From contig NC_068983.1 of the NCBI RefSeq assembly GCF_001194135.2, positions 74,159,186-74,199,436 on the forward strand: a stretch of 40,251 bases of DNA, read 5' to 3'. The notes below the pieces were generated by a model that saw only the letters and a list, made by a program, of their open reading frames with translations, was not told the origin of the DNA and made no database searches. The DNA comes from Octopus bimaculoides (lineage: Eukaryota). The translations under genes and the position numbers were made by a program. How positions within the stretch are numbered: position 1 is the stretch's first letter; the number at the start of each line of letters is the position of its first letter. Below, in pieces: positions 17,570-36,883 of this stretch.

Positions 17570-17681
17570 GCATTTGTATTTGGTTGGAATGCTGAGGTTG
17601 TATTGAAAAGAAACTTAAATCATAACATCTCCGCTGGTATAGGCTTGTGTATTGCAATTATCATTGCTGGACAGGTTTCAG
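17570..17681 (+). CDS. Aquaglyceroporin (AQP3/7/9/10-like) internal exon equivalent to AQP3 exon 2 (end of TM1, loop A, TM2)
   Basis: Acceptor tttcag|G, donor G|gtaaga. 112 nt, phase 0 to 1. Translates AFVFGWNAEVVLKRNLNHNISAGIGLCIAIIIAGQVS(G), which aligns to AQP3 MFGCGSVAQVVLSR...[21 protein letters not shown]. Confidence 0.93.
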
Positions 17682-17919
17682 GTAAGATAATTCCTGAATT
17701 ATATTGTCAATATTGGTAGCACTGGGGAACAAATGAAAAAACAAAAAAAAAATATTCATGCCTCAGGTTTTAGACCTGATTTTAGGTATAGTCAGTCCTC
17801 CGAAAAAGAATATGTCCTTCATTTCTTCCTAGCAGCTGTACTTTTTGAGATAATGTACAGCTGCCCACACATAAATCTGGGATAGGCCGCCGGCAAGATT
17901 ATTATAGCATCAGATATAG

Positions 17920-18680
17920 TTTGCAATGTATATGACAAATACTTGAATAAGCATTTAAGGGACAGAGAAAATCCGTTTCTGATTTTGTGACAATACATAC
18001 TTAAGCTATTTCGAAATAAAATTAGGGGACCAAGATAAGACATGGGCTCCACACATTGTCTGTAAAACTTGTATTGAGCACCTTCGGCAGTGGACAAATG
18101 GTCTGGAATTTGGTATACCTATGGCGTTGAGAGAACAACGGAATCACAGTGAAGATTGTTATTTTTGTGTGGTTAACATGAAAGGCATTAATGGACCTAA
18201 TCGGAGTGAATGGATGTATCCTGACTTAGACTCGGCAAAACACTTGTTGTACACTCAAACGAAATACCAGTCCCATCATTCATTAATCTATCTAGAAGGG
18301 CTGCATGAAGAAGATGAATCCTGTTCTTCACCTGTAAACAGTAGTCATGATGCCAGTAATTTTCAAGGAACCTCATCAGTGGCACAAGTTTTTAATTAAC
18401 CGGAGCTCAATGACCTCGTTAGGAAGCTAAATCTCTTAAAGAAATATGCTGAATTGTTGGCGTCTAGACTAGCAGAGAAGAGTTTATTGCATCCGGAAAC
18501 CAAAGTTACATACTATCGCAATAGAGAAAGATTTTTAGCCGTTCTTCTCGGGGGAAAGTGATTTTCATTTTTACAATCAATGTTCAAGGCTTGCTGGGGA
18601 AAATGGGCATATCACAATATCTACCAAGCAAAAGGCGGCTGTTCATAGACAGTGTTATGCAAAGCTTGTGCCTAGAGGAG
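17920..18680 (+). mobile_element. Decayed DNA transposon with an N-terminal Cys-rich domain (type usually catalogued as TcMar-ISRm11-like), in aquaporin intron
   Basis: Frameshifted translation YLSYFEIKLGDQDKTWAPHIVCKTCIEHLRQWTNG..FGIPMALREQRNHSEDCYFCVVNMKGIN...YPDLDSA, and RRLFIDS near 18630. These match the motifs LGDQDKxWAPH, PMxWRExxNHxxDCYFC and WRLFIDS. The superfamily label comes from memory and is less certain than the TE call. Confidence 0.7.
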
Positions 18681-18748
18681 AGAAGAATACTGTAGAATTA
18701 ACAGTGCTTGCTCATATAACTACTTTTAATATTCTACCATTCCTCCCA

Positions 18749-33657: not shown

Positions 33658-35534
33658 CTAGCAGAGATACCCGGCGTTGCTCTGGATTAAAATGGTATAG
33701 TTTGTATATATATTACAGTTATGTTGTAACAGGTGATACGGGAAAGAGCAGCATTGACGACATTTGTGGAGTAAATGATGGGCTAATTCGACTAAGCGAC
33801 ATGTCATGGAAAATTGGGGGTGGGGGTATGTGCATGCTTTTGCTGATCTTAAGAAAGTCTCATCTCACTTCTGTCTTGAGACTCCATCTGACGTGCTGCG
33901 GCATACCTTTGCTGATGTTAGGAAAGTCTCATCTCACTTCTCTCTTGACACTCCATTTGACGTGCTGCAGCATGCATTTCCTAATCTTAGGAAAATCTCA
34001 TTTCCCTTCTCTATTGAGATGTCATTAATTTAAGGGTAAATATGTAACTGTAAATATCTTGCAACCTTGCAACTGCTGCGATAATTATGAACTGGTAATT
34101 AAACGGTAAATGTGTAATTTTATAACCTTGGACCTACCACCTAATTGTTTTTTATGAAGAGTTTCACCTCCAGCCGTTCGTTATGTCACTCAACGCACAT
34201 ACACTGACACACCATTCTGCTGTTATGGCGGTAAAGACGGAAATTTACCGATGCGTAATATTTACATTAGGATATAAATTATTCATTTATTTATCACAGT
34301 AGAATTAAAAGTGAAAGAACAAAAGTGTAACAGTATCATAGGCTTAGAAAGAAAAGTGAAAGAATAAAGAATAAAACAATATTATGACATTATATATGAT
34401 ATAGATCTTATTCTTTCACTTTTGACACGTAATACCAAACTACTACCAATGTTATATTGTTTTAATCGAAATGAAAAAAAAGAAAAATTACGTGTTGACA
34501 CTCACGGAGTCTGATACTATTGTAAAATTTGATTTGATTTGGTCGAGGCGTTTGAAAATGCATAGGAAACAAACAGACAGACAAACAGACAGACAAAGAA
34601 TTTTATGTATATATATATATATATATATATAGACAATGTAGTCAATTTGTAGACAGAACTTACAAATCCAGTTTGAGCGTAGAAGTAAATAACTTGAGTG
34701 AAAAAACTTGAGCCGCTTTAGGATAGCTTTTTCCAATGCATGACCGCTTAGTGGCGTGGTTGAAATCTCATTGGTTAGTAATAAAGGCTGTATGTGGCCC
34801 AAAGCGGTCATACGTATGCACGACAGCACGTACAACATTTTTCAACAGAGGGAGACATGTAAATAGTGTATTTAAATAGACGGAGTGCAAAGAATTTTAA
34901 TTAAATAAAGTAAATGTTGTAGGGAGAACGTACAAATAGCGTAAAGACGAAGATATTTAGGCTCAACAAAATTGAAATACACTGAAGTCAATTTTTAGGC
35001 AGATGTGGCAAAACTGAGTTTAAACACAGTGGGTGAACAGAAATTAGAAATAACTAAATTATGTTTCAGGGAGAATGTAGAAAAACTGTAACAACATTTT
35101 TACGTACGACTAATTGAAATACACAGAAGTAAAATTTGTAGACAGAAGTTAATGTGTGAGTGAGTTAAAGAGAGAGAGAGTGAAAGAAATAGACATAGAC
35201 TAAAAGAGAGGAACTATTACAGAGGGTGAGAGACAGAATGTGTGTAAGCAAGAGAAACAGAGAATGAGAAAAAGAGAGACAAGAGAAAAATAAAAGGAGA
35301 GAATCGGTTGAAAACTGCAGAAGTTTTTAGAGAAAAACATGCCTAAAATACTGTTTTTCTCGGCTTATCGCTTTACGCGGGAGCTCTGGGTAAAATGTTA
35401 TAATGCATGACTATCCTTGGCACATAAGTAATGTTTGTGTGAACTTTCGCGAAAGTCGGTTGAAAACTGTAGAAATGCATAGGTACTACACACACAGACA
35501 CACACCCAGACGTCTTTTGCTTTATATATATAGA
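33658..35534 (-). mobile_element. Non-autonomous Helitron, about 1.88 kb
   Basis: On the minus strand it starts A|TCTATATATATAAAGC and ends ...gagcaacgccgggtatctctgCTAG|T (GC-rich subterminal hairpin plus CTAG). It sits between A and T with no duplication, and removing it restores ttaaaca|taactagtccagg of the mariner. Confidence 0.9.
33835..34025 (-). repeat. About 2.7 x 69-bp repeat inside the Helitron, encoding decayed RepHel N-terminal-type 23-aa repeats
   Basis: The 69-nt period is visible (gtct at 33857 and 33926, atct at 33995). Minus strand reads AAARQMECQERSEMRLS*HQQRY / AAARQMESQDRSEMRLS*DQQKH. Confidence 0.7.
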
Positions 35535-36668
35535 TAACTAGTCCAGGAACCTTTTTGATACCACCTCATATATATATCGGTGTATACTCAAAGCAATGAC
35601 TAGTAATATTACGAAACCGGTATGCTTGTAAATCTCTTTAACAACTCACAATAATGACTTTTATTACCTTTATTCCAACCTCAGTTCATCTAATTGTATA
35701 TATATATATCGTTACTTTTCATAAAAGGCCTTACCTTCGTTTTGATTTCCAATGTGCATTTTCTCTTATTTTTCTGCTTACTTACCCCTTACATTTCCGC
35801 GTGTAGTTTCTATTTTGTTTTTTTAACATATTTCTATTATATATATATATATATATATATATATATACTTGTAATCATGTGTAAGGTGCATTGGTATATA
35901 TAAATGTTTGTGTATATACGTATGTATGCTTCTAGGCAGCCAAAAAGCAGAGCCTTTGGATCATCGGATGGATTGCTTTGAAGTAATCGTCCTAGTTCAT
36001 TAGTTCTGAGTTAAAAGACCTCCGAGATCCCTTTCGGCTTTCGTCATTTCGATGTCGATAAATGAAAAGTACCACTTCTATACGGCAGTCGATTCTTCAC
36101 TTTCCTTCTGTCTTTCTATCTTTTTGAGGAAAATCGACTGCCGCTAGGCCAGGAGAAGCATTGTCTCCGGCATGTCTAAAATGCCTAAAATACTTCGTAT
36201 CACAACGACTTCATGGAGAAGTTCAGGGTCTATGACAAGGTATATATGTATGTACGTGTGTATGTTTTTATCTATATATTGCATATATGTAATGTGTATG
36301 TTTGTTTTTTTATGTATGCATATATGTATCTGTGTTTGTAAATGTCTATGCGTATGTATTCCTATGTGTGCACGAATGTTTCTATGTATGCTTTTATGTA
36401 TATATGCAATATATGGAAGCATATGTATATGGGCATATGTATATGGGCATCTGTATATGGGCATATGTATATTTATTTATGTGAGCATAAGCATGCATAT
36501 ATGTATTTATGCGTGTATGAATAAGTACTATGGCAAGAAGATGTGAAGATCATCATTGATAGATTGTAAAGATAATAGACGCAATTTGTCCAATCATATC
36601 CCTATTTTCTATTTTTTCGACCACTATAAATTGGTTATATATCTTATTACAATATTCTTCGTTTTCAG

Positions 36669-36883
36669 ATTATAGCTGCTTTTCTGCTTGTGATTGGCAT
36701 TCTCGCCATTTCTGACACTGATAATATTCAATACAAGCCAATTATGTTACCAATAACAGTAGGAATCCTACTCACGGCTATCATAGCTTCCTTTTCGCTC
36801 AACGAATGCGCAATAAATCCTGCCATAGATGTTGCCGGAAGGATCCTGCTTGCTACAATATCAGGAAACTCAACAGTTTTTAG
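36669..36883 (+). CDS. Aquaglyceroporin exon equivalent to AQP3 exon 5 (TM4, TM5, loop E with second NPA box)
   Basis: Acceptor ttttcag|ATT, donor AG|gtatgt. 215 nt, phase 0 to 2. Translates IIAAFLLVIGILAISDTDNIQYKPIMLPITVGILLTAIIASFSLNECAINPAIDVAGRILLATISGNSTVF. Glyceroporin-type P2=D and P3=R follow the NPA. Confidence 0.95.

Follow-up and report, generated by a model that had tools for sequence, protein, structure and literature searches.

Introduction

The arginine of the selectivity filter (aromatic/arginine, ar/R) is the most conserved selectivity determinant of aquaporins, and its guanidinium group both serves as a hydrogen-bond donor to water or glycerol and repels cations and protons. 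In mutagenesis studies on AQP1 by Beitz, Wu and colleagues, removal of this Arg reportedly admitted protons, ammonia and other solutes. Among the major intrinsic proteins (MIPs), third-position variants of the Asn-Pro-Ala (NPA) box are known in accepted members of the family, and the animal proteins AQP11 and AQP12 are reported to deviate both at the NPA boxes and in the filter. The one well-studied natural aquaglyceroporin (Glp) lacking the filter Arg, viz. AQP2 of Trypanosoma brucei (TbAQP2), has been treated as a rare case (PMC11088622, PMC8355241). This protein arose by a recent duplication and occurs only in T. brucei and T. evansi, and the Asp at its Froger position P2 is exposed (PMC8355241); its filter is wider and more hydrophobic, and the L264R replacement abolishes pentamidine uptake (PMC11088622). 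In the present work, a gene located in a 40,251-nt stretch of the Octopus bimaculoides genome (contig NC_068983.1, positions 74,159,186 to 74,199,436; referred to below as the window) is described, whose product is a Glp-type protein with neither an Arg nor an aromatic residue in its filter, and which belongs to a subfamily of such proteins specific for cephalopods.

The gene models for this protein are already present in RefSeq and UniProt under names derived from homology (“aquaporin-9”). Thus, the gene itself is known, but a description of its filter was found in none of the literature that could be searched; a published account of any cephalopod or mollusc Glp lacking the Arg was likewise not found there, subscription journals being outside the coverage. 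As far as it can be tested, this is in accordance with the proposal, made in an initial annotation based on the letters of the window, that the gene represents an undescribed cephalopod subtype, and the automated names “aquaporin-9” and “aquaporin-8” given to its members are masking its distinctness.

Results and discussion

Selectivity filter and family assignment of the octopus protein

The four exons of the gene that are present in the window (exons 2 to 5, Table 1), when spliced, encode without any stop codon a product of 192 aa, which is 100% identical to residues 33-224 of the O. bimaculoides protein XP_014784013.1 (“aquaporin-9”). Upon alignment by MAFFT L-INS-i to the GlpF filter residues W48/G191/F200/R206, the filter of this protein consists of Ala54, Ile192, Cys200 and Ile206 (A/I/C/I) at the positions H2, H5, LE1 and LE2, and the HMMER alignment to AQP3 structures agrees with this. 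The prediction in the initial annotation of a filter free of aromatic residues and of Arg is borne out by these results, and all of the codons it had quoted are found where it placed them and encode the residues it gave. The assignment at H5 is anchored on the conserved residues G185, I191 and N198, and the alternative candidate for this position (Ile159, ATC 36780-36782) is likewise an Ile. However, the gap-free alignment to AQP3 and AQP9 reported in that annotation is incorrect, as relative to AQP3 the octopus protein lacks five residues in loop A, ahead of transmembrane helix 2 (TM2), and a further residue in the part of loop E that separates H5 from LE1. The filter assignments stand despite both these indels.

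The retention of Glp markers, which had also been claimed, holds true for the Froger positions P2 (Asp207) and P3 (Arg211), both of which are invariant across the cephalopod clade described below, but not for P1. The Phe in the SSFP motif had been taken for P1, but this position corresponds to Y108 of GlpF (PMC4625025), which is aligned to Leu114 of the octopus protein. At this position 95% of canonical Glps contain Tyr, whereas L, I, M or C is found in the Arg-less clade. Positions P4 (Pro235) and P5 (Val236, non-aromatic) are seen in the RefSeq protein, the exon encoding them lying outside the window. Where an aquaglyceroporin is expected to have an aromatic residue at H2, Gly or Ala at H5, Arg at LE2 and an aromatic P1, this protein contains A/I/C/I and Leu, while its acidic P2, basic P3, Pro at P4 and non-aromatic P5 are those of the family. 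Both Asn-Pro pairs are present, the second box reading NPA and the first Asn-Pro-Val (NPV). The latter variant had escaped mention in the initial annotation.

The family assignment made there is supported by several lines of evidence. The product of exons 2, 3 and 5 alone scores 65.7 bits with the Pfam MIP family (PF00230; E = 6.8e-18), for which the curated cut-off is 25, and the best sequence matches in the PDB are AQP3 (2e-37), AQP10, AQP7, GlpF, TbAQP2 and PfAQP, with AQP3, AQP10, AQP7 and GlpF scoring from 1e-37 to 1e-26 versus 1e-13 for AqpZ. An AlphaFold model of the O. sinensis orthologue, which is 98% identical, was obtained from a 72-sequence alignment with a predicted local distance difference test (pLDDT) value of 88.9 and a predicted template-modelling (pTM) score of 0.85, and in it the two half-helices are placed at residues 75-83 and 204-218. 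In Foldseek comparisons the target-normalised template-modelling scores of this model were 0.87-0.90 for AQP3, AQP7, AQP10 and TbAQP2 and 0.85-0.89 for GlpF, as compared with about 0.76 for water-specific aquaporins, the overall range for AQP3 being 0.84-0.90. Based on the profile matches and the model, the protein is a member of the MIP superfamily with a predicted aquaglyceroporin fold of six TM helices and two re-entrant half-helices, TM1 and TM6 being encoded beyond the limits of the window.

A cephalopod-specific clade of Arg-less aquaglyceroporins

In an exhaustive search of 1.84 billion representative sequences, no more than two proteins fell below E = 1e-30, each of them from a cephalopod, viz. 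the Sepia orthologue (57% identity) and a paralogue from O. sinensis (42% identity). When a profile was made from six members of this clade, the six cephalopod entries scored 370-543 bits, whereas the canonical Glps of bivalves and gastropods that follow them scored no more than 251 bits. Of the 121 aligned sequences consisting of the best hits of this profile and GlpF, 115 contain Arg at LE2, and the six exceptions are the members of the cephalopod clade. In a neighbour-joining tree based on 100 bootstraps, the clade is divided into two groups, A and B, each recovered in 100% of the replicates, and their grouping together is supported at 98%. The filters are A/I/C/I in the octopod members of group A, V/I/F/L in Sepia, A/I/I/L in a second decapodiform-like transcript and S/V/P/L in paralogue B. 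It is clear from these results that the Arg-less proteins constitute a cephalopod-only subfamily with two paralogue groups, in which the filter has turned small and aliphatic.

Comparison with 66 canonical relatives shows that changes at six positions (G35, Y114 (P1), D152, R206, F213 and T214) are shared by the whole clade. Arg206 and Ala76 of the first box are both invariant in this canonical set; at the latter position, i.e. the third residue of the box, V, T or G is found in clade A (the box reads NPT in Sepia, and another transcript has NPG). Overall, 25 of the 64 positions that are conserved in canonical Glps are kept in all six clade sequences. The AGWG motif following loop E is replaced in clade A and kept in paralogue B, while the pore-lining residues Asn74 and Asn203 as well as the half-helices are strictly conserved. 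The genome of Argonauta hians contains both of the Arg-less paralogues along with a canonical Glp (P0100) with the filter F/G/Y/R.

Paralogue B is represented by XP_029642182.1 and XP_029642181.1 from O. sinensis and by P0304 from Argonauta, which are labelled either “aquaporin-8” or “aquaporin-9”. Its relationship to the octopus protein is seen in the identity of about 40% (XP_029642182.1, “aquaporin-8 isoform X2”), its sister position at 98%, the absence of the Arg (NPA-Leu) and the common changes at G35, Y114, D152, F213 and T214, but it differs in its filter (Ser/Val/Pro/Leu), in having NPA in both boxes and in its location on another chromosome-scale record. All group-A proteins, from the octopods to Sepia, end in Asp-Thr-Lys-Phe (DTKF), which fits the pattern of a putative class I PDZ ligand. 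Sporadic aquaglyceroporin-like proteins with an Arg-less LE2 are also found outside cephalopods, viz. in Gouania willdenowi (XP_028306473.1), Saprolegnia diclina (XP_008612234.1), Sarcoptes scabiei (KPM02745.1) and a JGI protein (P0117); as a set, the second box and LE2 of these four read NPA-Thr, NPA-Val, NPG-Thr and NPS-Met. The filter of P0117 (A/I/C/M) is similar to the octopus filter. An intronless MIP on a metagenome contig (P0001), which was retrieved in the first word-index protein search, proved to be irrelevant and was not used.

Integrity of the gene and genuineness of the substitution

The codon ATA, which encodes Ile206, is one substitution away from AGA (Arg), and ten runs of N are present in the scaffold; hence, the unusual filter could in principle be due to a sequencing error, or to exons of different genes having been joined over the gaps. 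However, the LE2 codon is also ATA in the independent and gap-free assembly of O. sinensis, it is ATT (Ile) in Argonauta hians, and the residue is Ile in O. vulgaris. In a Sepia transcript the codon is TTG (Leu), and Leu is also found in the second decapodiform-like transcript (SRR27666075) and in paralogue B of two octopods. The codon at this position thus varies among the cephalopod sequences, but it never specifies Arg, and the question of an error at this site, which had accompanied the initial annotation, is settled by the Ile in three other octopod genomes and the Leu in cuttlefish mRNAs and the paralogue. Further, all of the assembly gaps fall in introns, the order of the locus is the same as in O. 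sinensis, and adenosine-to-inosine editing would not be able to convert ATA into a codon for Arg, because its middle base is T. Based on these considerations, an artefact of this kind is so improbable that it can be set aside.

The possibility that the gene is a pseudogene or a decaying duplicate, in which the Arg was lost due to relaxed constraint, can draw upon two observations: the match to AQP3 is far poorer for the second half of the protein than for the first (14 versus 63 bits), and only the 25 of 64 canonical positions noted above are kept throughout the clade. However, three genomes show an undisturbed reading frame with intact splice sites, and the Sepia orthologue (P0002) is seen as an uninterrupted open reading frame (ORF) of 855 nt, i.e. 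as full-length mRNAs, in at least 18 RNA-seq assemblies, the source of which according to the depositing papers was Sepia esculenta larvae. The ratios of nonsynonymous to synonymous substitutions (dN/dS), determined by the Nei-Gojobori method for exons 2-5, were 0.16 between O. bimaculoides and O. sinensis (dS 0.08), the comparison with Argonauta gave 0.09-0.11 (dS about 1.0-1.2), and for exon 5 alone the ratio against Argonauta was 0.10-0.11. These values are not those of a neutrally evolving sequence, which the initial annotation had named, along with a lack of expression, as a sign of a pseudogene. In addition, the stretch IIASFSLNECAINPAIDVAGR is identical in Octopus and Argonauta, and the filter-bearing loop has thus stayed unchanged despite a dS of about 1. 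The gene is intact and under purifying selection, and its interpretation as a pseudogene, already refuted by the dN/dS values, is left with hardly any probability.

Comparison with TbAQP2 and other aquaglyceroporins

TbAQP2 (PDB 8jy6, 8ofx) resembles the octopus protein in its filter. Both filters are aliphatic and lack the Arg as well as aromatic residues (I110/V249/A259/L264 in TbAQP2 versus A54/I192/C200/I206), both proteins have non-canonical boxes of the NPA type and a P2 Asp without its Arg neighbour, and the Foldseek score normalised to TbAQP2 is 0.89. However, these similarities should not be interpreted as showing that the two proteins are specifically related. Their identity is only about 27%, TbAQP2 ranks below AQP3, AQP7, AQP10 and GlpF among the matches, and as judged from the sequences the loss of Arg in TbAQP2 and in the cephalopod clade is independent. 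The two also differ in their boxes (NSA/NPS in TbAQP2, NPV/NPA in octopus) and in the bulk of the filter residues, the octopus protein being bulkier at H5 (Ile versus Val) and smaller at H2 (Ala versus Ile). Further, in contrast to the narrow distribution of TbAQP2, members of the cephalopod clade occur in octopods as well as in cuttlefish and fall into two paralogue groups.

The closest solved relatives of the octopus protein, viz. vertebrate AQP3, AQP9, AQP10 and AQP7, share with it an AGQVSG motif that precedes the first box, together with the P2 Asp, the P3 Arg and the P4 Pro, and AQP9 also has Cys at LE1. They differ in having an aromatic residue at H2, Gly or Ala at H5, Arg at LE2 and an aromatic P1, the latter being Leu in octopus, and loops A and E are shorter in the octopus protein than in the AQP3 type by 5 residues and 1 residue, respectively. 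The canonical mollusc Glps (e.g. Argonauta P0100, “aquaporin-7-like”, and those from Mytilus, Haliotis and Biomphalaria) belong to the same family with 31-37% identity, but they possess W(F)/G/Y/R filters and NPA/NPA boxes and reach at most the 251 bits with the clade profile mentioned above. With AQP11 and AQP12 the similarity is limited to both being non-canonical, as no AQP11/12-like protein is found among the relatives, and the best matches and the fold are of the Glp type.

Functional interpretation

The interpretation that we favour, and consider fairly probable, is that the gene encodes an intact aquaglyceroporin with a wide, aliphatic pore similar to that of TbAQP2, through which the range of solutes would be broadened or shifted and in which the exclusion of charge would be weaker. 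The tetramer would be kept, each monomer with its own pore, and the central constriction at the two Asn is probably functional, because both pore Asn and both half-helices are conserved. At the outer constriction, the only charged hydrogen-bond donor and the aromatic wall would be gone and the lining would be formed by Ala, Ile, Cys and Ile. A filter of this kind would be hydrophobic and probably wider, with an unpaired Asp207 alongside as in TbAQP2; a hydrophobic, less charge-excluding filter is what the loss of the Arg and the aromatic residues, and the analogy with TbAQP2, would lead one to expect. Bulkier, less polar or cationic solutes might then be favoured and the exclusion of protons and cations reduced, while some permeability to water and glycerol would probably be left. 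The carriage of larger or charged solutes, suggested in the initial annotation, is something that we infer purely by analogy with TbAQP2 and with the Arg mutants of AQP1.

A number of points weigh against this interpretation. At H5 the Gly of Glps is replaced by the bulkier Ile, which together with Ile206 could narrow or dewet the constriction instead of widening it. The transport of water and glycerol by TbAQP2 is much like that of its canonical paralogues (PMC8355241), so the loss of Arg need not alter the physiological substrate, and it has been disputed whether pentamidine is conducted by TbAQP2 or only bound (PMC4734766). In addition, mRNA evidence is confined to the orthologue from Sepia, and the neighbour-joining tree gives no clear placement of the clade within animal Glps.

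The first and second of these points lead to two other interpretations. If the drift in the filter has been tolerated by the fold, the protein may be an ordinary glycerol/water channel with canonical substrates. The conservation of the fold, of both pore Asn and of Froger positions P2-P5 is consistent with this, and so is the observation that all T. brucei MIPs, TbAQP2 included, pass water, glycerol and metalloids similarly (PMC8355241). However, the LE2 Arg is invariant in 66 of 66 canonical relatives and in all 115 sequences outside the clade, and six otherwise conserved positions have been altered together across the clade. A canonical F/G/Y/R Glp (P0100) is also retained in cephalopods, and the retention of two additional paralogues, in which the filter has been remodelled and purifying selection is strong, speaks for a role of their own. 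An ordinary channel is therefore regarded as unlikely.

In the other case, closure or dewetting of the outer constriction by Ile192 and Ile206 would make the protein a hydrophobically gated or non-conducting MIP, acting as a regulatory partner or a partner in hetero-tetramers, as an intracellular channel, or as a pathway for gases or lipophilic solutes. The change from Gly to Ile at H5 places bulk exactly where Glps need space, the filter is without any polar side chain, the AGWG motif is replaced in clade A, and the kinetoplastid AQPX proteins with unusual filters show poor permeability to water and glycerol (PMC8355241). However, as estimated from standard residue volumes, the changes to Ala at H2 and to Cys at LE1 remove much more volume than is added at H5, and the strict conservation of Asn74, Asn203 and the half-helices is unexpected for a dead pore. 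We consider a gated or closed protein of this kind to be improbable, and the wide aliphatic pore remains the interpretation that we prefer.

A more specific proposal is that the Arg-less proteins are a dedicated pair of coleoid channels of aquaglyceroporin origin, kept since before the split of octopods and cuttlefish, which owing to their aliphatic filter would act as conduits for cationic or bulky organic solutes. In this case the solutes may include ammonium or methylammonium-type ions, osmolytes of the trimethylamine type and other organic cations. This proposal, drawn by analogy, is speculative and we give it little weight; if true, TbAQP2 would have its natural counterpart among animals in these proteins, which would also amount to a natural experiment on the removal of the ar/R charge barrier. 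In any event, an animal lineage is now available in which a filter of the same kind occurs in two paralogue groups under strong purifying selection, in octopods and a cuttlefish and beside a canonical paralogue, and with it direct tests can be made of which solutes pass through an Arg-less Glp pore, by what means charge is excluded without the Arg, and for what purpose such a pore is used in cephalopod physiology.

Structure of the gene and other features of the window

Only one MIP gene, on the + strand, was found when the window was searched by tblastn with human AQP3, AQP7 and AQP9 and E. coli GlpF and later with cephalopod proteins. The window (35.7% G+C, ten runs of N) is the middle part, from intron 1 to intron 5, of the gene for XP_014784013.1, and the segment to which the initial annotation referred, 17570-36883, extends exactly from the start of exon 2 to the end of exon 5. 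The AG acceptors of exons 2-5 are each preceded by a pyrimidine tract, and the codon phases fit, with a Gly split between exons 2 and 3, an Asp split between exons 3 and 4, and a phase 0 junction between exons 4 and 5. The locations of the exons, of the residues discussed above and of other features are given in Table 1.

Table 1. Location of the gene features and other elements in the window
Feature	Position	Strand	Remarks
Exon 2	17570..17681	+	End of TM1, loop A, TM2; AG acceptor, GTAAGA donor; ends in phase 1; residues 33-70 of XP_014784013.1 (100% match); orthologue in O. sinensis and Argonauta
H2, Ala54	17633..17635	+	GCT in all three octopods; aligns with GlpF W48, AQP3 F63; canonical Trp/Phe
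Exon 3	19476..19613	+	Loop B with first box, half-helix, TM3; AG/GT sites
First box, NPV	19487..19495	+	AAT CCA GTT
P1, Leu114	19607..19609	+	CTT; aligns with GlpF Y108; non-aromatic
Exon 4	30712..30824	+	Loop C, SSFP motif, start of TM4; AG/GT sites; matches P0152 and P0282
Exon 5	36669..36883	+	TM4, TM5, loop E with second NPA box; AG acceptor, GTATGT donor; ends in phase 2; 95-100% match with octopus proteins
H5, Ile192	36783..36785	+	ATA; aligns with GlpF G191, AQP3 G203; canonical Gly/Ala
LE1, Cys200	36807..36809	+	TGC; aligns with GlpF F200, AQP3 Y212, AQP9 Cys; three residues before Asn203
Second box, NPA	36816..36824	+	AAT CCT GCC
LE2, Ile206	36825..36827	+	ATA; aligns with GlpF R206; near-invariant Arg elsewhere
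P2, Asp207	36828..36830	+	GAT; invariant across clade
P3, Arg211	36840..36842	+	AGG; invariant across clade
Gaps outside 17570-36883	2392-2883, 5744-5850, 6218-6227, 6868-7150, 11699-11915, 12993-13002		Runs of N
Gaps within 17570-36883	27316-27642, 28652-29049, 30998-31107, 32311-32585		Runs of N, all in introns 3 and 4
Segments without O. sinensis counterpart	17716-18953, 33857-35894		Introns 2 and 4, respectively
Tandem repeat, 69 nt x 2.7	33832-34017		Adjoins the segment 33857-35894
ORF, 173 aa	20237-20758	-	Intron 3; no Pfam match
Perfect tandem repeat, 3 x 20 nt	20661-20720		
Transposase remnant	29669-29965	-	Introns 3 and 4 (with next row)
Transposase remnant	33169-33507	+	
VPVFLPL (rejected)	33526-33603	-	Similar to a TM6 motif
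Inverted repeat	38441-38613/39129-39301		Intron 5; arms of 173 nt, 90% complementary, 515 nt apart

Neither motif scans nor tblastn queries (AQP3, AQP7, AQP9, GlpF and cephalopod proteins) located exon 1 (TM1) or the last exons (TM6 and C-terminus) in the window. These exons lie outside it, as seen in O. sinensis, where within a gene of 78 kb exon 2 is separated by 35 kb from exon 1 on its upstream side, and exon 5 by 19 kb from exon 6 on its downstream side. One minus-strand segment resembling a TM6 motif (VPVFLPL) was rejected as a chance similarity (E about 0.5-1), it being on the wrong strand, intronic and without a match to the octopus protein. In the isoform XP_014784014.1 (P0284) and in the O. 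vulgaris model CAI9719784.1 (P0283), TM6 is replaced after exon 5 by short unrelated tails, and no 3' exon for either of these alternative C-termini (RefSeq isoform X2, O. vulgaris model) is present in the window.

The smallest distance between any of the gaps within the gene segment and an exon is 174 nt. For eight of the ten gaps in the window, one or both edges border on a dinucleotide repeat of TA, TG or AC, and the two gaps of 10 nt lie inside a GGT-rich and a CA/TG-rich repeat; gaps of this kind look like short-read breaks at simple repeats and not like structural faults. In a megablast comparison with the gap-free O. sinensis locus (L004), 28 collinear +/+ blocks of 84-93% identity cover the window from 599 to 40251, and this collinearity spans all ten gaps, none of which hides an inversion or an exon. 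The two intronic segments for which no counterpart is present in the O. sinensis locus are likely lineage-specific insertions or deletions.

Scans of the window for Rfam families and tRNAs returned nothing. Of the two transposase remnants, one contains a Tc1/Tc3-type helix-turn-helix domain (PF01498, 1.7e-12) and the other a partial mariner-type DDE domain (PF01359, 5.8e-06), while the 173-aa ORF in intron 3 is presumably, from its appearance by eye, the C-terminal part of a reverse transcriptase of a long interspersed nuclear element (LINE). The inverted repeat in intron 5 looks like a foldback element or one similar to miniature inverted-repeat transposable elements (MITEs), and the region containing it also aligns to O. 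sinensis.

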